Shown one piece after another: positions 2,963-20,607 of a stretch of 64,000 nt of DNA. Each line of letters opens with the position of its first letter. Within the stretch, counting starts at the first letter, position 1. The notes beneath the pieces are model-generated. The model made no database searches and was not told the origin of the DNA. It saw nothing but the letters and a program-made list of their open reading frames with translations. The translations under genes and the position numbers were made by a program. Location: the sequence record ON190025.1, one strand, 5' to 3'.

Positions 2963-2992
2963 TTCATATTCCTATTAGTTGTTTTATAATAT

Positions 2993-5900
2993 TTATGACT
3001 CACTCAGTGACACGACAGACACTGCACCATTTTTATTGAAACTCGCAGACTCAAGCAACAGCTTGTGTTCGCGCTCAATTTCAATATCACTTAATGCCTT
3101 TGTGTGCAATTTACCTTTATGAGTCACACCATTAAAGCGAAAATCTTCACTCGTTGATGAGTTATACCCAAATGTAATGTCATGATCAGATTTAAATTCT
3201 ATGAAATCGTCATCTAGTGTCGCAGTATCTAGTAATGAACCATTCACATACAATCTAAACAGTTTCGCTTTTTTAACGAGCGATATAGCAGTTATCTCGT
3301 TCACTGTATGCGGGATACCTGCAAGAGTATACCACCGATCACCAGATGTCTCAGATACTGAAATACGAGCGTCATATCGACCGTTATTTGCAACGATACC
3401 AGTATGAAAACCTCTACTCGCCATGATTAACGCTTCGGTATCTTGAGTCTCAGATAGTGCAGTACACAGAACAGTCATCGTAAACTCACTCGTATCCCAA
3501 TCTGCATCACTAAAAGTAACATCTAGTGAATTATCAATCAGTACACCACCATTGGCAGCTAATGTACCGTCAGTGTATAACCCACCTTTATCAATCAACG
3601 GGTTATTGAATTGAGTGATTGACGTTCTTGACATCGATTTGTCTGTAAACGGCTCAATGTCAGTAAAATCAAGATATGCATATAGTGAATCGGTATTACC
3701 GACTTCATCAAACACGCCTGCATATGTTGTACCATCTTTATTGACATTTGGCTTATTGAAACTACCGCGCAAGAAAGATGTACGAGTGTAGTTAATACGT
3801 TCACCTAGTTCGTTATAACGGCGACCTTCTTTTTCTTCGAGAAGCTTTTGACCGTTTTTAAACCCAATCAACGACCACGTACCGCGAGTGATAATTTCAC
3901 TCGGACCATAATCAGCACTGAAGTACGTTTTGAAATACTCATCGAGTGTACCATCTTGCGCTGAAGATGCATCACAACGAGCAATACTCAATAACCAACC
4001 ATCTTCCATCTTATCAATAGCGTGCTTAACCCAGTTGTGCGCGTCTTGTGCGTCAGTAACTTCAGAACCCGTAGAAATGTATACGTCACCGTCAAACTCG
4101 TAGTACTGAGAGACTACAGTCCCTGCGTATGTGTCGAGGTTACCAAATGCACGCAAGTTCATCCCGTGGTCGAAAATACAGAAATTTAACCCGCGTCTCG
4201 ATAAAGGAGTCCCTTGTTTAACACCGTCAATGAACGTAGCTGTACCATCATCAAATGACTCAGAACTCGAACGAATCTGAATTTCTGTTTCAGCAGAGTC
4301 ATCCCACCCCTCGACTAAACGCGAGCTATTAAGCTGACCTTTATTGTCGATACTTGTTTTTACGTTCATCAACTCTTGAATTTCCGATTGTTCAAGAGCT
4401 TTCGCATAAATCTTATAATCAGCAACGCCACCGTAGAAGCCTTCACTAATAGAATCTCTAAACGCACCAGTATTGAGAACTTTAAGATACCCGACACCAA
4501 GACCGATGTCACGCGGGCTTCCGTTGTGAGTTTTAGTCACAACCCCATCAACATACCATTTTGTAATACCAGTTTCACCATCGAATACTACAGCACAATG
4601 TCTCCATTCATTAAGAGTACCTGGCAAACCGTCAGAACCGCCCGAAGATACCCGCTCACCCGCAATACCTGCGTAGTTCGAATCTCCCCACCCATAGCCG
4701 ATTTCGAACCCACTTGATGTATCCCAACTATTACCACAAGATACCAGAACTGAGTCACGAGAACGTTGATTGCGTTTATTGATCCATGCCATCCACGTAA
4801 AACTATCTTCAGGTGGCACGTAACCGTCAACAACCCACGCACAAGGAGTTCCTTGAGTTCGTTCATAGCCATTAGAACTATACCATATTGCGTCACTTCC
4901 CGGTGACCAGTATGTAGTATGACCGACAGGAGATGGTTTTATATCTCGCTCGCTGAAAAGATAATATACAGATGGCTGTTTCGTGTTATTAATCGACATA
5001 TGAGAATAAGAAACTGAAGTGTAATCTCTAGCCTCAACATCGGGGTGATTGATATACTCAGCGTCATGATTAAATCCAGATGCGTCGTGTAGATTATACT
5101 GAGCTGGGTTAATGAAACGACCTGTAGTATTTGATACCTTGTAATCATTTGCACGGTCAGTCATCAATTCAAGCTGAACATTCTTGAAGTACTTCGGACC
5201 CGTTGGCCCATAATGTCCATAAAAGTAAATCGTTGCGCTTGAATTAGAACTCCAATCCCACTGAGCATCGATCTCAAATTCAACTTGAATTCGTTCCCAT
5301 GCTTTTGAGCGAGTTGGTCTTACGTACATACGCTTCGCAAACGAACGATTGCCGCCGATCACAGGTCTATATAACCCGATATCCCAATACGGAATGCCAC
5401 TACCAACGTCTTCAGTATAAACGTCAAGTGATAAAATCATCTTACGACCGATACGACGATCATTAGGCGAACCATTTGGGTCAGTTTCTAAACCAGGGTC
5501 TAGTAATTCATTATTAAGGGTCGTGTGTGTTAACCCAAGCCAACCACCATCAATGTTATTCGCATACCCGACAGTTTCACCTTGAAACTCTTTAAAGTGT
5601 GCATGAATACGATTATTGTCGGGGTCTGAGCCACCGTTCCAACCACTAGACCAACCCGGTACGATTAGCGCGTCTTCATGTAAGTCGGGATCCCAGCCGA
5701 TGTTTGTATGCACTAACGGGTCAAACGGAACTGCACCTAACAATGAGCTATTCACAATACGGTTTTCAAATCCCGGTTCTAGATCGTCAAATGTATAATG
5801 CACCTGAAGACCACGTGCAAGTTCTTTGATTTCAGCAGTCGAAAGCGCGTGGTCATACACTCGAACATCATTCAGCTTACACGTCGGTCGATAATTGCTC

Positions 5901-6451
5901 GCACCTAGGTGTGTAGTAGACCATGCGAATAGAGCAATGTAATCTTCTTGATATGCCATGTCATACGAGAAAGTTCTCTCAACTACGCCATCAACCCATA
6001 GTGTCACAACACCATCAGTATATCTCATAACACAGTGATGCCATTTCAAGTGCATATTAGTCGTACCGTAGTACGTGTGATATGTTCGCGACGTACCATT
6101 ACCTGTATTACAACTCAACAAAGCAGAAGTGACACTATCACATTTAAGCGTCAACCCGGGCCCTGTGTCGTCGGAGTGGCTATGCAGAGTAACTATACCA
6201 TTCGCAGTTGAAAGATGATAATTCCCCATTGGTCTGATCCACGCAGTCAGCGTGAAATCTTTGTTTAAATTAACTTTGCGCTCACTTCGTAGATAATCAT
6301 TAGTATTGTAAACTGTGCGCTCTTGACACAGCCCCAATTTACCTTGACTATCTACGATTGCACCGCTATCGTTATAAAGACTCAAGTGGTTTTCATTACC
6401 ACTCCAGTCTTTAAGATCTTTATGTAAAGGGTACCATGCAATTAATGACAT
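2993..6451 (-). CDS. Tail fibre-associated multi-lectin protein (LamG/concanavalin-like domains plus ILEI/PANDER-like domain)
   Basis: 1152 aa; repeated FTxxAWI...WxHxxxxY...LxVDG...YxxALSxxEI LamG signatures; RRGLNF...DTY...RGTWSLIG segment. Confidence 0.7.
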   Translation of the reverse strand: MSLIAWYPLHKDLKDWSGNENHLSLYNDSGAIVDSQGKLGLCQERTVYNTNDYLRSERKVNLNKDFTLTAWIRPMGNYHLSTANGIVTLHSHSDDTGPGLTLKCDSVTSALLSCNTGNGTSRTYHTYYGTTNMHLKWHHCVMRYTDGVVTLWVDGVVERTFSYDMAYQEDYIALFAWSTTHLGASNYRPTCKLNDVRVYDHALSTAEIKELARGLQVHYTFDDLEPGFENRIVNSSLLGAVPFDPLVHTNIGWDPDLHEDALIVPGWSSGWNGGSDPDNNRIHAHFKEFQGETVGYANNIDGGWLGLTHTTLNNELLDPGLETDPNGSPNDRRIGRKMILSLDVYTEDVGSGIPYWDIGLYRPVIGGNRSFAKRMYVRPTRSKAWERIQVEFEIDAQWDWSSNSSATIYFYGHYGPTGPKYFKNVQLELMTDRANDYKVSNTTGRFINPAQYNLHDASGFNHDAEYINHPDVEARDYTSVSYSHMSINNTKQPSVYYLFSERDIKPSPVGHTTYWSPGSDAIWYSSNGYERTQGTPCAWVVDGYVPPEDSFTWMAWINKRNQRSRDSVLVSCGNSWDTSSGFEIGYGWGDSNYAGIAGERVSSGGSDGLPGTLNEWRHCAVVFDGETGITKWYVDGVVTKTHNGSPRDIGLGVGYLKVLNTGAFRDSISEGFYGGVADYKIYAKALEQSEIQELMNVKTSIDNKGQLNSSRLVEGWDDSAETEIQIRSSSESFDDGTATFIDGVKQGTPLSRRGLNFCIFDHGMNLRAFGNLDTYAGTVVSQYYEFDGDVYISTGSEVTDAQDAHNWVKHAIDKMEDGWLLSIARCDASSAQDGTLDEYFKTYFSADYGPSEIITRGTWSLIGFKNGQKLLEEKEGRRYNELGERINYTRTSFLRGSFNKPNVNKDGTTYAGVFDEVGNTDSLYAYLDFTDIEPFTDKSMSRTSITQFNNPLIDKGGLYTDGTLAANGGVLIDNSLDVTFSDADWDTSEFTMTVLCTALSETQDTEALIMASRGFHTGIVANNGRYDARISVSETSGDRWYTLAGIPHTVNEITAISLVKKAKLFRLYVNGSLLDTATLDDDFIEFKSDHDITFGYNSSTSEDFRFNGVTHKGKLHTKALSDIEIEREHKLLLESASFNKNGAVSVVSLSES

Positions 6452-8642: not shown

Positions 8643-10079
8643 TTAAAAGCTGTAGCGTTCGACGCCTACAGTTTTCATCATGATCTTGACTGGCTCAAGC
8701 TCACCACTCAACAGTGAAGTCAAGATAGATGGGCTACAACCAGATACCAGTGCAGTGCCCGCTTCGCCAGCTTTAACCGGAACGTTGCCAAGACGACCAC
8801 GAATGTTCCAAAAGACCAGTTGTGGCATTTCATAACCAGCACGTGCGTACTTGGCTTTGATTGCATCGAAGTTCGCAGGTTCACCGCGACCGTACCATCC
8901 ACCACCAGTGTTTGCTTGATCGAATTCCATGTCACTCATGATAAGCAACTTGGTTGGCATATCTTCTTGTGAAAGATTTGCACGCTTCGCACGTTCTAAC
9001 AGAACATCAAAGCACTTACCGATGTTCGTGCTCATGTCTTCGCCTGAACGATTCATGTTATCAAGACGCTCTTTCAATGAAGAGCCGCGCAACTGGTGGA
9101 AGTGCGGGTCGCTTGAGAACGAAATGAACTGATCTTTGAAGATGCCTTCATTGCGTTCAGCAACATAAATCCCAAGAGACATTGCAACTTGCTTACAAGT
9201 CACACCTGAATGGTCTGTACCTGCGTTAATTGGCGTGCTCATAGAGCCAGACACGTCAACAACAGGGATGATGCGTTCATCAGAACCTTCCATGTAGTTT
9301 GGCAGAGCTTTCCATTGCTCGTTCGCTACAGACGCATTACCGTGACTAACGCTCTTAACGACATCGTATGGGAACAGTGCGCCAGCGTTGATCTTCGCTT
9401 CACCTTTTTGAAGTGACTCGATGTAGCTTGTGTAACGAGCTGAAGCGTTACGACCGAATGCTTGTTGATAACGAGCAGACGCTACAGAAGGCAACTTACC
9501 GAAGTCGATTGCATCCCATTTTTGCGCACACATCTTCTGCTCAACAGTGTCAGACAGAAGCGACAGAATCTTACGCCACTGCTTCGCAGTTACGCCAAGA
9601 GACTTGATTGTGCGCTTGAACACATGACCGTTTTTGCTGTTTTCACGTGGGAACCACTTCGCAGCAAGACCATTCTTGTCATTGACAATTGCGTTCGACC
9701 ACATTGTAATCGCATCTTTTTCAAGACGTGTACCGAAAGCAGAAATCAAGTCATCGTAACGACCTAGTTCTGGAATTTTCGACATTACAGCACGAGCTAC
9801 GTCAGGCTGTTCATTACAAAGTTTAGTGAATAGTGTACGGAAAGTACCACGTTCACCCGCACCACCTCGAACGTCACGAGACCACAAAAGAATGCGAGTC
9901 GCTAGTTCTGGGTTTTCTGCAAACGCACGACCGAACAGCGTTTTAGACTGATCGTTGCCACGCATAGCAGCAATACCGAAGAACAAGTTTAGACACTCGT
10001 TACCTGAAGTGCTGTGAGTAACTGCACCGTTTGCTGTGCGTGAATCGTTTGTTTGCATTGCGTTCATAAATACTGACAT
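8643..10079 (-). CDS. DUF2828-family protein (helical TROVE/Ro60-like N-terminal region plus C-terminal vWA)
   Basis: TANGAVTHSTSGNECLNLFF, RDVRGGAGER, LAAKWFPRE, KINAGALFPY; MIDAS DVSGSM, SDMEFD, VFWNIR. The TROVE relationship is inferred. Confidence 0.85.
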   Translation of the reverse strand: MSVFMNAMQTNDSRTANGAVTHSTSGNECLNLFFGIAAMRGNDQSKTLFGRAFAENPELATRILLWSRDVRGGAGERGTFRTLFTKLCNEQPDVARAVMSKIPELGRYDDLISAFGTRLEKDAITMWSNAIVNDKNGLAAKWFPRENSKNGHVFKRTIKSLGVTAKQWRKILSLLSDTVEQKMCAQKWDAIDFGKLPSVASARYQQAFGRNASARYTSYIESLQKGEAKINAGALFPYDVVKSVSHGNASVANEQWKALPNYMEGSDERIIPVVDVSGSMSTPINAGTDHSGVTCKQVAMSLGIYVAERNEGIFKDQFISFSSDPHFHQLRGSSLKERLDNMNRSGEDMSTNIGKCFDVLLERAKRANLSQEDMPTKLLIMSDMEFDQANTGGGWYGRGEPANFDAIKAKYARAGYEMPQLVFWNIRGRLGNVPVKAGEAGTALVSGCSPSILTSLLSGELEPVKIMMKTVGVERYSF

Positions 10080-10115
10080 TGTTCATTTCCTCATAATTAA
10101 TTGCTGTAAAATGTC
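10075..10115 (-). promoter_or_regulatory. 5' UTR copy of the helix-NN-NCWGCAA motif pairing over the DUF2828 start codon
   Basis: GACATT-TT-ACAGCAA-TTAATTATGAGGAAATGAAC-AATGTC; AATGTC contains the ATG and the GAGG SD is in the loop. Confidence 0.8.
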
Positions 10116-10127
10116 GTTGATGTGATG

Positions 10128-12828: not shown

Positions 12829-12853
12829 AAAAAAACCTGCTCAAGGCAGGTTT
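12829..12853 (-). terminator. Terminator ending the tRNA/ncRNA operon
   Basis: AAACCTGC-CTTGA-GCAGGTTT then T run. Confidence 0.85.
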
Positions 12854-12868
12854 AGATGTGCAATACAC

Positions 12869-13113
12869 AGACATTCGAGAAGTGTTTTATCGTCTTTCCT
12901 TAAATCTCATTTGACTATAACGATGTTTCTCATCGGAAAAATACTCATGTTTCGGCATGAGTCCTATTTCGTTTGACAGTACGAACACCGTCTTAATGGT
13001 CATTTCCTACCACGAGAATGCGACAGGCTCACGTCATCACTGAGAAAGCAGCTAGTGCGCCTCATTACTATTAAAGTTTGCTTTGATTTTGTAATGATTG
13101 CTGTACAATGTCT
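12869..13113 (-). ncRNA. ~245 nt structured RNA closed by the motif helix
   Basis: AGACATT-GT-ACAGCAA...AATGTCT; internal hairpins TCATTAC/GTAATGA, ACTCATG/CATGAGT, CGATG/CATCG, TTCGT/ACGAA; no ORF in the track. Confidence 0.75.
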
Positions 13114-14548: not shown

Positions 14549-14624
14549 TGGAGGTGACACCGATACTCGAAATCGGATCTTACGCCGTATGAAAGCGTTG
14601 CTCTGCCACTTGAGCTACATCACC
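14549..14624 (-). tRNA. tRNA with CAT anticodon (Met-like), atypical U73
   Basis: ACGCT-TTCATAC-GGCGT, CCA. Confidence 0.85.
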
Positions 14625-14857
14625 AATTGCAGTAATTAACTCATTTAATCGCACACTGGCTGACACCATATATTCATGGTCTGAGTGAGGAACCACATAG
14701 TGGGTACTGTTACCTCTGCTTAGTTTTGATTGTTTTACATGACGATGACTAGAAACGTTCATAATAATGCCACGCGATACATCCTATATCGCTGCTAACA
14801 TCTAAGTTAGCGTATCCTGCCTTTCGGCTACAGTGTCGTTTCCGACGAATTAAGTAC

Positions 14858-15085
14858 AGACAATACCGAAGTGTTTTTTCGTCTTTTGCATAAATCGGAG
14901 TTGACTAGCTTATTGATTCTCAACAAGCAAATATCGTCTGTTTCAGCGACGCGCCTATCTGACTATTTCTAGACAGAGAGAATCTTTCCTTTCAAGCTGC
15001 GCCTAAGCAAGCTCAGGTTAAAATCAGCCCAGGTTAAGATCATCACTTCTTTTAAGTAATTTCAATTGTTTGCTGTATATTGTCT
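14858..15085 (-). ncRNA. ~228 nt structured RNA closed by the motif helix, paralogous to 12869-13113
   Basis: AGACAAT-AT-ACAGCAA...ATTGTCT; shares AAGACGAWAAAACACTTC (17/18) and AGTGATGA with the 12869 RNA. Confidence 0.75.
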
Positions 15086-15148
15086 CCCTCACCATGCTCG
15101 TGATATGCCGAAGCAAAGTATCATTCGTCGCATGATAAGAGCTTAATA

Positions 15149-15224
15149 TGGCACGCCGTATGAGATTCGAACTCATAACCCCATCCTTAGAAGGGACGTG
15201 CTCTTCCAATTGAGCTAACAGCGC
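15149..15224 (-). tRNA. tRNA-Arg(TCT)
   Basis: CGTCC-CTTCTAA-GGATG, CCA. Confidence 0.93.
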
Positions 15225-15298: not shown

Positions 15299-15373
15299 TG
15301 GTGGACACGCAGGGAGTCGAACCCTATCTTCCTCATTGCAAGTGAGGCGCTTTCCCAATTAAGCTAACGGCCC
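15299..15373 (-). tRNA. tRNA-Ala(TGC), irregular acceptor stem
   Basis: G3.U70 present; inner acceptor pairs mismatched or bulged. Confidence 0.85.
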
Positions 15374-15690: not shown

Positions 15691-15696
15691 GTTACT

Positions 15697-15808
15697 GAGT
15701 GTTATTACTAGCGTCGTCCAGACCAGTGATACCAACACTGAAAGGGAATCGAACCCTAAACATTTCTTTCCGATAAGAATATTAGTAAATTGTTTGCTGA
15801 AAACACTC
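15697..15808 (-). ncRNA. YrlA-like circularly permuted tRNA mimic (candidate phage Y RNA)
   Basis: GAGTGT-TT-TCAGCAA...AGGG-TTCGATT-CCCT (T arm), CAGTG-TTGGTAT-CACTG (closed acceptor), GTC-TGGAC-GAC (D arm)...ACACTC. Confidence 0.75.
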
Positions 15809-15817
15809 TTCGGTATT

Positions 15818-16206: not shown

Positions 16207-16218
16207 TTGAATTTAAAC

Positions 16219-16276
16219 AGTAATCCTTTTTGCTTTTTCCAAATAAAAGTTTTGTATTGTTTGCTGTAAGATTACT
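16219..16276 (-). ncRNA. 58 nt RNA consisting mainly of the motif
   Basis: AGTAATC-TT-ACAGCAA...GCAAAAAG-GATTACT. Confidence 0.7.
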
Positions 16277-16281
16277 TAAAC

Positions 16282-16970: not shown

Positions 16971-16980
16971 ATTATTCAAC

Positions 16981-17067
16981 AGCTTGCGTTCTTTGGTCTG
17001 TTTATCGCTGTCTGAACTGAGTTCGCCGAGCGATCAATAGATTAAGTTAAATTGCAGTATGCAAGCT
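16981..17067 (-). ncRNA. 87 nt motif-closed RNA
   Basis: AGCTTGC-AT-ACTGCAA...ATCGCT/AGCGAT hairpin...AAAGAAC-GCAAGCT. Confidence 0.7.
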
Positions 17068-17072
17068 AAAAC

Positions 17073-18941: not shown

Positions 18942-19057
18942 TGGTAGTCGGGGCTGGATTCGAACCAGCGACCACGTGCTTAACAGGCAATTGAAGGAGT
19001 GCTGGAGCGATACTTGTCAGTATCATTCTTCGTGCTCTACCACTGAGCTACCCGACT
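18942..19057 (-). ncRNA. tRNA-shaped RNA, anticodon loop replaced by a motif-bearing insert (CCA present)
   Basis: AGTCGGG/CCCGACT-A-CCA, normal D and T arms; insert GATACT-GACA-AGTATC-GCT-CCAGCAC. Confidence 0.75.
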
Positions 19058-19840: not shown

Positions 19841-19965
19841 TGGTGGAGAGTACGGGATTTGAACCACGTGACAAAAAGATTTACCTAGTTATTAAGGTTT
19901 GCAGCATGAATGCTTGTCAGTATTCTTTAACATTCTTTTGCTCTACCAGACTGAGCTAACTCTCC
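19841..19965 (-). ncRNA. tRNA-shaped RNA with motif-bearing insert (CCA present)
   Basis: GGAGAGT/ACTCTCC-A-CCA; AAAAGA/TCTTTT stem encloses GAATACT-GACA-AGCATTC-AT-GCTGCAA. Confidence 0.75.
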
Positions 19966-19975
19966 GGAATTTGAA

Positions 19976-20088
19976 GGTGAAGTGCAGGACTCGAACCTGC
20001 GACCTCCGGCGTGCATGTGAATGCAGAATGAAATCTTATCAGACTTCGTTTTTTGGCCGGCGTTCTAACCTACTGAACTAACTTCACC
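19976..20088 (-). ncRNA. tRNA-shaped RNA with motif-bearing insert (no CCA)
   Basis: GGTGAAGT/ACTTCACC; insert AAAAAAC-GAAGTCT-GATA-AGATTTC-AT-TCTGCAT. Confidence 0.75.
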
Positions 20089-20301: not shown

Positions 20302-20481
20302 TCAACACAACCTGAAATCGTGCGCTTTATTTACGGGATGAATGACCCGTTCGCATATGATTAGCGCAAAAGTATGAATGCGCACCTTTTCTTCTTCAAT
20401 GTCCAAGGCAAAGAGGACGATGAATACTAGTGCGAGAAGATATACAATCAAATTGTTCACCTCGCTTGATAAGTGAGAGTA
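20302..20481 (-). CDS. Possible small membrane protein
   Basis: Hydrophobic LIVYLLALVFIVLFAL stretch after a GAGG SD; start uncertain. Confidence 0.4.
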   Translation of the reverse strand, partial: YSHLSSEVNNLIVYLLALVFIVLFALDIEEEKVRIHTFALIICERVIHPVNKAHDFRLC

Positions 20482-20484
20482 CAT

Positions 20485-20607
20485 TGGTCGAGTGTAACGG
20501 AATCGAACCGTTCCCACGATCTCCCTATGATATGCGTAAATTGGTTGCTGAATATAATCATGTCTGATTACAGTATGCTACGTGTGCTGCCACTACACCA
20601 ACACTCG
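20485..20607 (-). ncRNA. tRNA-shaped RNA with motif-bearing insert (CCA; acceptor extends to 21 bp); paralogue of 20104
   Basis: CGAGTGT/ACACTCG-A-CCA; insert GTAATC-AGACAT-GATTAT-AT-TCAGCAA. Confidence 0.75.

Follow-up and report, generated by a model that had tools for sequence, protein, structure and literature searches.

The window analysed here, 64,000 nucleotides (nt) of sequence record ON190025.1, matches Vibrio phage PVA23, a KVP40-like Schizotequatrovirus, at 100% identity and carries ~31 transfer RNA (tRNA) genes at 13.1–20.1 kb, all on the minus strand. Within this cluster, the 524-nt spacer between tRNA-Arg(UCU) and tRNA-Met(CAU) (positions 14625–15148) raises the question of which RNA it encodes and what that RNA works with. 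A sequence-only reading of the spacer had proposed one large non-coding RNA with two crossing folds (folds 1 and 2) and a tRNA-like end, had named the phage RNAs GOLLD and ROOL as precedents, and had pointed to a DUF2828 protein. We find that the spacer holds a 229-nt core that is a real, conserved, structured non-coding RNA. In the best-supported reading, this core and a paralogue, copy B, are enlarged members of a phage RNA family whose genes are linked to DUF2828 genes, and the core is probably a Y-RNA-like partner of the Ro60-like DUF2828 protein.

A conserved structured RNA in the Arg–Met spacer

Because the spacer sits inside a minus-strand tRNA cluster, an RNA made from it reads on the minus strand, and all the complementarities quoted in the sequence-only reading are present on that strand. 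All 50 related Vibrio phage records have a syntenic spacer between tRNA-Arg and tRNA-Met. We compared the spacers of PVA23, R11Z and ValKK3; of V05, TCU-VP03, KVP40 and PVA8; of VS1, VS2 and nt-1; of D482, D484 and K566; and of F86 and 1.081.O. The PVA23 spacer is more stable than shuffled sequences (z = -3.08; 0 of 100 shuffles equally stable) and contains no open reading frames (ORFs) except those that overlap the flanking tRNAs. A coding role was rejected on this ground and because indels of 1–2 nt and compensatory pairs cross the conserved blocks. Scans with Rfam and ARAGORN, which had been suggested as a check, returned nothing for positions 14625–15148: Rfam, at gathering scores and at E ≤ 10, gave no GOLLD, ROOL, YrlA, tRNA, transfer-messenger RNA (tmRNA), riboswitch or ribozyme, and ARAGORN gave no tRNA or tmRNA. 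Kinship with GOLLD or ROOL thus found no support; like them, the core is a large structured RNA among phage tRNAs, but its architecture is different and it is much smaller.

The spacer is modular, with a long 5′ hairpin, the core, four short hairpins and a 3′ module (Table 1), and the core is the part found in every spacer compared, with invariant stretches of more than 30 nt even in D482. The other modules are more variable. In nt-1, F86 and 1.081.O the stem of the 5′ hairpin has been replaced beneath the same UUCG tip; the four short hairpins are kept in orthologues with compensatory changes, the first being deleted in D482; and VS1, VS2, nt-1 and 1.081.O are without the 3′ part of the 3′ module (its hairpin and the arms of fold 2 helices A and B). 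An extra 78-codon ORF (ORF188) lies between tRNA-Arg and the 5′ hairpin of nt-1 (positions 1212–1448 of locus L010), where the spacer grows to 689 nt.

The core, conserved in 50 Vibrio phage records, corresponds to fold 1 (14858–15085) of the sequence-only reading, which had taken it for a discrete, motif-closed unit; both this and the general claim of a structured non-coding RNA in a phage tRNA cluster stood up, since the closing helix and internal hairpins are conserved and covary. We built a covariance model, R1, from 12 orthologues with a P1–P6 structure read from the sequences; it scores the core at 245.7 bits. In an R1 alignment of 20 orthologues and paralogues (A4), 87.7% of cells were paired, against 34–45% when partners were slid by 1–3 columns, 35 of 51 core pairs changed on both sides, and the covariation score was 0.281 against at most 0.074 in the slid controls; the alignment was fitted to R1, and the slid controls and compensatory changes read by hand agree with it.

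Compensatory replacements can be seen directly in the orthologue sequences, in the closing stem and in five internal helices. P1 is 8 base pairs (bp) long, joins the ends of the core around a large interior and has compensatory changes at 3 pairs: GACAAU/AUUGUC here is GGCAAU/AUUGCC in F86, GAUAAU/AUUAUC in 1.081.O and GACAUU/AAUGUC in the paralogue. P2 is rebuilt as AUCUUU/AAAGAU in F86 and CUAAUC/GAUUAG in D482. The CCU/AGG segment of P3 becomes CGU/ACG in D482 and CUC/GAG in 1.081.O; its variable tip ends in UUCG, CUUG or GAAA loops and has gained 15 nt in the PVA23 clade (~15010–15024). The stem of P4 is wholly different in 1.081.O (UUCUUAUG-GAAA-CAUGAGAA) and in F86 (CAUAUCA-GUGA-UGAUAUG), while the GNRA loop stays. 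P5 reads CGAC/GUCG in D482, UCAC/GUGA in F86 and ACUCAUG/CAUGAGU in the paralogue, and the P6 loop is GNGAA in most copies. The unpaired elements are conserved as sequence: in main-copy orthologues the GCAA of the motif beside P1 is invariant, the A of its CAG varying in F86 and 1.081.O, and the 3′ strand at 14866–14907 is nearly invariant there and largely the same in the paralogue.

ValKK3, an otherwise 96% identical phage, has the 7-nt P6 loop exactly inverted, GAUUCUC for GAGAAUC (locus L004, equivalent of 14915–14921); this is a hairpin-loop inversion. Three further ideas about the core were tried and rejected: a helix P7 (CGAA/UUCG; 74% paired, no covariation); pairings of the UACAGCAA strand, one to the 3′ strand of P1 and one to the 5′ side of P6, neither kept in F86 or 1.081.O; and a CsrA sponge, GGA motifs occurring in the core at about the frequency expected from base composition by our own count.

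Since exact-pattern scans of IMG/VR and metagenomes found only KVP40 and VH7D, and otherwise chance or coding matches, the large form of the RNA appears limited to the ~50 KVP40-like Vibrio phage records. The literature that we searched holds no description of the core RNA or of DUF2828-linked RNAs. The core RNA is real and outside Rfam, and the family to which we assign it is apparently undescribed.

A paralogue and small siblings share the core's signature

Copy B, a full-length paralogue of 246 nt, lies directly after the last tRNA of the operon, tRNA-Ser(GCU), and ahead of the operon terminator, and is present in all KVP40-like phages examined. Core and copy B share the signature that defines the family: they begin with AG and a terminal stem, 6–9 bp long across the family and 7–8 bp in the form seen with the core, that joins the ends; [U/A]CAGCAA comes directly after the first strand of this stem; and the 3′ strand is A-rich, with CUG(U) at the end. 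The minus-strand sense of the RNA, the paralogue at the end of the tRNA operon and the closing stem with UACAGCAA as family hallmark were all absent from the sequence-only reading.

The short motif pattern occurs 15 times in the window, with 5.1 occurrences expected, and on the tRNA strand it marks four further stem-closed elements (Table 1). The 62-nt element has a compensatory change, AGCAAUCUU/AGGAUUGCU, in KVP40. The A-rich 3′ half of the small members corresponds to the 3′ strand of the core at 14866–14907. ARAGORN and Rfam make no tRNA call on the element at 20442–20563, which takes the place of a variable arm in a tRNA-like sequence. Our first stem-finder found stems of at least 6 bp at 82% of random positions and was not used as evidence.

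The cluster contains other tRNA-like genes. Three on the minus strand, of 112–122 nt (18945–19057, 19844–19965 and 19976–20087), have full-length tRNA scores in Rfam and are marked as pseudo-tRNAs in KVP40. Their acceptor, D and T arms are retained, and an insert of 50–60 nt, which contains a hairpin with a CUGAYAAG loop, replaces the anticodon region. A YrlA match at 19940–20004, at the junction of two of them, is likely an artefact. The minus-strand tRNA at 15302–15373 (Rfam 44.9 bits) has acceptor-stem mismatches and no ARAGORN call, and its KVP40 counterpart is annotated as a pseudo-tRNA.

Family members in other phages are linked to DUF2828 genes

The same signature is found on RNAs of 50–130 nt beside DUF2828 genes in Vibrio, Aeromonas, E. 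coli, Klebsiella, Listeria, Staphylococcus, Bacillus and Mycobacterium phages. R1 detected mini-versions in Aeromonas phage phiWae14 and in the E. coli Felixounavirus EC6, all four copies of which read AGAAGACC..-UUACAGCAAA...-..GGUCUGG. In an alignment (A6) of 15 small members from six lineages, CAGCAA is invariant and the 7-bp terminal stem is 98% paired, with 7 of 7 pairs changing on both sides, values inflated by the fact that small members were picked partly for having the stem. A second model, R2, scored family members at 31–65 bits; the best score in 836 kb of unrelated viral DNA was 25.5 bits, and the tRNA region of T4 gave nothing.

In most lineages examined, these elements lie near the gene and on its strand. 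Four lie just 3′ of the DUF2828 gene in Klebsiella phage KP2025; three lie just 5′ of it in Listeria phage LMTA-57, with RtcB 1.3 kb further on; three fall within a 380-nt gap 3′ of the gene in mycobacteriophage Snenia; and four begin 340 nt 3′ of it in EC6. In these four phages the elements are on the same strand as the gene and within 0–0.6 kb of it; the four elements of phiWae14 are in an upstream tRNA cluster. We also applied R2 prospectively to four lineages outside the training set (6ec, Izhevsk, PC14 and fHe-Yen9-04). Staphylococcus phage 6ec yielded three tandem copies (28–33 bits) immediately 3′ of the gene, and Bacillus phage Izhevsk one weaker copy in the gap before the gene, its 23.7 bits lying below the best background score. 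In every lineage examined, the DUF2828 gene itself has a tRNA cluster around or near it, or RNA-repair genes close by. RNA ligases are among the neighbours: the Listeria phage has RtcB, and a Yersinia jumbo phage with a DUF2828 gene, in which no family RNA was detected, has an RNA ligase. We conclude that the linkage between RNA and gene holds in eight phage lineages, bearing out the suggestion in the sequence-only reading that the DUF2828 protein was worth connecting with the RNA.

Other structured RNAs share some of these clusters. In LMTA-57, the tRNA cluster also holds a ROOL-like RNA (positions 5470–6021 of locus L171; 88.5 bits against a gathering score of 99.1; E = 2e-16) and a drum RNA (2983–3081; 50.2 bits, above the gathering score); the three CAGCAA elements, the DUF2828 gene and RtcB follow ~1 kb downstream. 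In EC6, a stretch of the tRNA cluster that is free of ORFs (locus L168, 11847–12151) gives sub-threshold matches to tmRNA and permuted tmRNA (32.4 and 16 bits).

The DUF2828 protein of the window folds like Ro60

DUF2828 homologues occur in 711 of ~50,700 phage records. That of PVA23 was modelled with AlphaFold2 (predicted local distance difference test score, pLDDT, 79; predicted template modelling score, pTM, 0.77), and the top seven Foldseek matches in the PDB are all Ro60 or Rsr, with full-length alignments and E values from 1e-7 to 2e-5; they include the Ro60 of Thermus phage phiLo, D. radiodurans Rsr, Xenopus Ro60 and human Ro60. On this model, the protein folds like Ro60, while its Pfam assignment is DUF2828, not TROVE. 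Core and copy B are on the same strand as its gene, ~4.8 kb and ~2.8 kb upstream.

The leader of this gene carries a stem-closed element of its own (Table 1), conserved in KVP40, 1.081.O and F86 as well as PVA23, four Vibrio phages in all, and without covariation. In sequence the leader seems to mimic a family element and to bury the start codon, which suggests translational autoregulation. Directly downstream of the Ro-like gene is an RNaseH-like gene (PF04308; 8069–8599, minus strand). The two genes are also kept together in 1.081.O and on a metagenomic T4-like contig (L169), F86 having a gene of the same size at that place, and the RNaseH-like protein could belong to the same module as a second component.

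Table 1. Features of the window discussed in the text (window positions; for fold 2 helices, the two paired arms)
Feature	Position	Strand	Details
Ro60-like protein gene	8643–10079	minus	Pfam DUF2828 + DUF7788; phrog_850 'RNA-binding protein' (PHROGs)
Leader of Ro-like gene	10072–10118	minus	Stem GACAUU/AAUGUC encloses UACAGCAAU and ribosome-binding site; start codon in 3′ strand
Intrinsic terminator of tRNA operon	12833–12853	minus	
Copy B, full-length paralogue	12868–13113	minus	nhmmer E = 1.2e-5; R1 72.6 bits, E = 1e-15, model positions 1–214
tRNA-Met(CAU)	14549–14624	minus	Downstream boundary of spacer
3′ module	14625–14773	minus	Holds fold 2 3′ arms and ACCAU/AUGGU hairpin; ends at tRNA-Met 5′ end
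ACCAU/AUGGU hairpin	14665–14680	minus	Conserved; covaries once, ACCAC/GUGGU in D482
Four short hairpins 3′ of core	14774–14846	minus	Two with GAAA loops: GUCG-GAAA-CGAC, GCC-GAAA-GGC
Core structured RNA, 229 nt	14857–15085	minus	P1, UACAGCAA motif, P2–P6, conserved A-rich 3′ strand
P1 3′ strand UAUUGUCU	14858–14865	minus	Followed by GU, so predicted RNA end is CUGU
Conserved 3′ strand UAGUCAA..GAUU.A.G..AAAGACGA.AAAAC...	14866–14907	minus	Formally unpaired; leads into P1 3′ strand
P6 hairpin GCUUGUU-GAGAAUC-AAUAAGC	14908–14928	minus	6/7 stem pairs covary
P5 hairpin CGUC-GCUGAAACA-GACG	14935–14951	minus	4/4 pairs change on both sides
P4 hairpin	14959–14976	minus	GNRA (GAAA) loop
P3 composite helix	14982–15040	minus	UCUU/AAGA, CCU/AGG, GCUG/CAGC, variable tip
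P2 hairpin AUUACUU/AAGUGAU	15042–15060	minus	7/7 pairs change on both sides
Family motif UACAGCAA	15070–15077	minus	Directly 3′ of P1 5′ strand
P1 5′ strand AGACAAUA	15078–15085	minus	Preceded by G, starts AG; pairs with 14858–14865
Long 5′ hairpin tipped by GCUUCGGC	15090–15148	minus	Minimum-energy fold; between tRNA-Arg and P1
tRNA-Arg(UCU)	15149–15224	minus	Upstream boundary of spacer
Fold 2 helix A	15029–15024 with 14663–14658	minus	
Fold 2 helix B	15016–15012 with 14685–14681	minus	
Fold 2 helix C	15009–15003 with 14723–14717	minus	
Sibling	15695–15810	minus	Stem GAGUGUU/AACACUC, motif UUCAGCAAAC, internal T-arm-like hairpin GGGUUCGAUUCCC
Small sibling RNA, 62 nt	16217–16278	minus	9-bp terminal stem, CUUACAGCAA, A-rich part, CUGU end; R2 65.2 bits
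Probable sibling	16979–17069	minus	Variant motif ACUGCAA, stem AGCUUGC/GCAAGCU; R2 22.4 bits, within background range
Stem-plus-UUCAGCAAC element	20442–20563	minus	In variable-arm place of tRNA-like sequence; then T arm and acceptor 3′ strand ending CCA

Comparison with Y RNAs and Dictyostelium Class I RNAs

Bacterial Ro60 has YrlA as its Y RNA (PMC4201824). The phage family resembles Y RNA and YrlA (RF02553) in its paired ends around a large interior, an arrangement that the core has, in a short conserved motif near the 5′ end, in having several copies per locus on the same strand as a gene for a Ro60-fold protein, and in the RtcB or RNA-ligase genes of its neighbourhood. Some siblings also have a permuted tRNA-like domain. 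Members that combine a T arm with an acceptor-like hairpin and a D arm give sub-threshold YrlA matches (Snenia 39.3 bits, E = 3e-7; KP2025 40.1 and 34.3 bits; gathering score 69). The core differs from Y RNA and YrlA in its length, 229 nt against 80–130 nt, in having no tRNA-like domain and no YrlA match, in its place inside a tRNA operon 4.8 kb from the gene, and in the protein concerned, which is DUF2828/DUF7788.

A second likeness was unexpected. The small sibling, at 16218–16275, matches the Rfam family Dicty_Class_I_RNA at 31.8 bits (E = 0.008 in a 10.8-kb search, 8e-5 in a local one); the gathering score of 41.5 was unreached by any phage element examined, namely this sibling, an EC6 copy and four other loci. 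Class I RNAs, which are reported to be unique to Dictyostelia, start with AAG, have a 6-bp covarying terminal stem with an 11-nt motif beside its 5′ strand and a variable interior, and end in CUGU (PMC7919456). To judge from their sequences, the phage elements closely resemble these RNAs and appear to share all the published hallmarks. In both, the terminal stem keeps its pairing and not its sequence, CUUACAGCAA stands beside the 5′ strand, the variable interior ends in an A-run and the genes are clustered. The 11-nt motif, CCUUACAGCAA in the Rfam consensus (RF01414), is AUAUACAGCAA in the core, UUGUACAGCAA in copy B and UCUUACAGCAA in the small sibling, and the AAG/CUGU termini have predicted counterparts in GAG...CUGU for the core and AAG...CUGU for copy B. 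On the other side, Class I RNAs are eukaryotic and 42–65 nt long, whereas the core has 229 nt, a complex interior and no Rfam match; they have their own DUSE promoters ~60 nt upstream, whereas the core lies in a bacterial-type polycistronic tRNA operon flanked by tRNAs; and their known binder is Rnp1A, an RNA-recognition motif (RRM) protein (PMC7919456).

We therefore raise, tentatively and as the less expected outcome, the possibility that the phage DUF2828 partner RNAs (stem plus CUUACAGCAA) and the Class I RNAs form one family, of which Class I would be the eukaryotic branch. Its members might be Y-RNA-like parts of a DUF2828/Ro-type particle, the 229-nt and 246-nt Vibrio RNAs being versions with an added effector-recruiting domain.

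A candidate partner RNA of the Ro60-like protein

The partnership that we consider probable, with the core acting as a Y-RNA-like RNA for the phage Ro60-like DUF2828 protein, builds on structure, conservation, paralogy, family signature, gene linkage and the Ro60-like fold of the protein. The core would be co-transcribed with the tRNAs and released by tRNA-processing enzymes, and ribonuclease (RNase) P cleavage at tRNA-Met would set the 3′ boundary of the spacer RNA. The terminal stem with UACAGCAA would then dock on the Ro-like ring, and the covarying interior P2–P6 may recruit a second factor or gate the access of damaged RNA. The last step is modelled on Deinococcus, in which a Y RNA tethers PNPase to Rsr. 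The RNA–protein particle may serve tRNA quality control or repair during infection, a role we propose because RNA ligases sit close by in the Listeria phage (RtcB) and in the Yersinia jumbo phage.

Several points weigh against this partnership. Every step that involves the DUF2828 protein is one that we infer. The core is without the known Ro-binding motifs, GGUCCGA in animals and GNCGAAN0-1G in bacteria, its 5′ motif being UACAGCAA, and its 4.8-kb distance from the gene in PVA23 exceeds the limit of ≤ 4 kb from a Ro60 orthologue that Chen et al. used as a criterion for YrlA (PMC4201824). Campylobacter phage PC14 and Yersinia phage fHe-Yen9-04 have the gene and no R2 match, and a metagenomic T4-like phage gave one variant only, 9 kb from the gene. 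Both the stem statistics of the small members and the covariation figures carry the selection and the fitting described with them. Finally, the elements also co-occur with tRNA clusters, so that a link to tRNAs is only partly distinguished from one to the protein; the fact that few tRNAs lie nearby in Snenia and 6ec speaks for the protein. Both this common tie to tRNA clusters and the 4.8-kb distance allow for other explanations.

Alternative explanations

The most serious of these is that the core is a stable tRNA-operon RNA with a role of its own and no tie to the Ro-like protein, making it the KVP40-group counterpart of T4 species 1 and 2 (rnaC and rnaD), and its conserved structure would be expected whatever the partner. 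As here, T4 has two stable non-tRNA RNAs in its tRNA operon, of 119 and 139 nt: rnaD and rnaC come after tRNA-Arg(UCU) at the close of the operon, and in PVA23 tRNA-Arg(UCU) likewise precedes the main copy, and copy B stands last in the operon, before the terminator. Neither R1 nor R2 has a match in T4 69000–75000, however, so that the operon positions alone are analogous, and the stem-plus-UACAGCAA elements beside DUF2828 genes in unrelated phages would be left unexplained. We consider this explanation unlikely.

A cis-acting element of the tRNA transcript, whether an RNase processing or decoy site, a riboswitch or a ribozyme, would suit the multi-helix junction with its highly conserved nucleotides and GNRA loop, the place of copy B just upstream of the terminator, and the small siblings in tRNA spacers, where processing occurs. 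Yet Rfam gives no riboswitch or ribozyme match, neither a gene nor an expression platform lies downstream of the main copy, and terminators differ between phages while copy B shows no matching change. Family members are also found away from tRNAs, beside the Ro-like gene, in Snenia and 6ec, and we regard a cis-acting role as improbable.

The model of the sequence-only reading, in which fold 1 and a crossing, long-range fold 2 with a tRNA-like end are alternating states of one RNA of ~520 nt, draws on the PVA23 sequence itself. Its single-sequence partition function favours fold 2 (pairing probabilities of 0.77–0.87 for the fold 2 helices against 0.03 for P1), the spacer is unusually stable, and cutting out the flanking tRNAs alone could release the whole spacer as one RNA. 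Across phages, covariation separates the two folds: the fold 1 helices are real, whereas no compensatory change was seen in the helices of fold 2, which is confined to the ~96–100% identical phages of the PVA23/R11Z/ValKK3 clade. The 5′ arm of helix B sits in the 15-nt insertion unique to that clade; outside it, the 5′ arm of helix C is found only as part of a UUCG hairpin and lacks complementarity to its 3′ partner; and the 3′ arms are deleted in VS1, VS2, nt-1 and 1.081.O, all of which retain the core. Fold 2 is a genuine complementarity within the PVA23 clade, but not a conserved feature. The insertion (~15010–15024) is approximately the reverse complement of two 3′-arm segments (14681–14723) that flank a GAGG...CCUC hairpin; it looks like a templated insertion, and the pairing of fold 2 may be a by-product of how it arose.

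Two further parts of that model fared no better. Its loop pseudoknot, GAUUCUC (~14984–14978) with the GAGAAUC loop of P6, shows one-sided changes, on the loop side only, and no compensatory change; the pairing is perfect in PVA23 and V05 alone, and is broken in ValKK3, D482, F86 and 1.081.O; part of GAUUCUC is also taken up by the covarying helix P3. The proposed T arm of a tRNA-like or tmRNA-like end is an ordinary hairpin with a 6-nt loop (ACCAU/AUGGU; Table 1) that neither ARAGORN nor Rfam matches. We rate the alternating-fold model as quite improbable.

Least credible, and in our judgement highly improbable, is a selfish or repeated DNA element, tRNA-derived or like a miniature mobile element, that spreads in tRNA clusters and yields a functionless RNA: there are several copies per cluster, one of them inside the tRNA-like gene at 20442–20563, and homing endonuclease genes are common in these clusters, but covarying stems, a fixed motif and the same sense as the tRNAs and the DUF2828 gene are the pattern of selection on RNA, and purifying selection acts strongly on the interior of the large copies.

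Implications

If the core is indeed a Y-RNA-like partner of the Ro60-like protein, the widespread DUF2828 protein of unknown function gains a candidate partner RNA with a recognisable putative binding motif, and with them a Ro-type particle that can be put to the test. The ties to tRNA clusters and RNA ligases point to a module for tRNA repair or quality control, maybe directed against host nucleases that cut tRNAs. The likeness to Class I RNAs suggests seeking a DUF2828 or Ro-type protein among the binders of these RNAs in Dictyostelium, and what the RNA recruits could be learnt from the two large Vibrio phage RNAs, whose interiors are conserved and covary.

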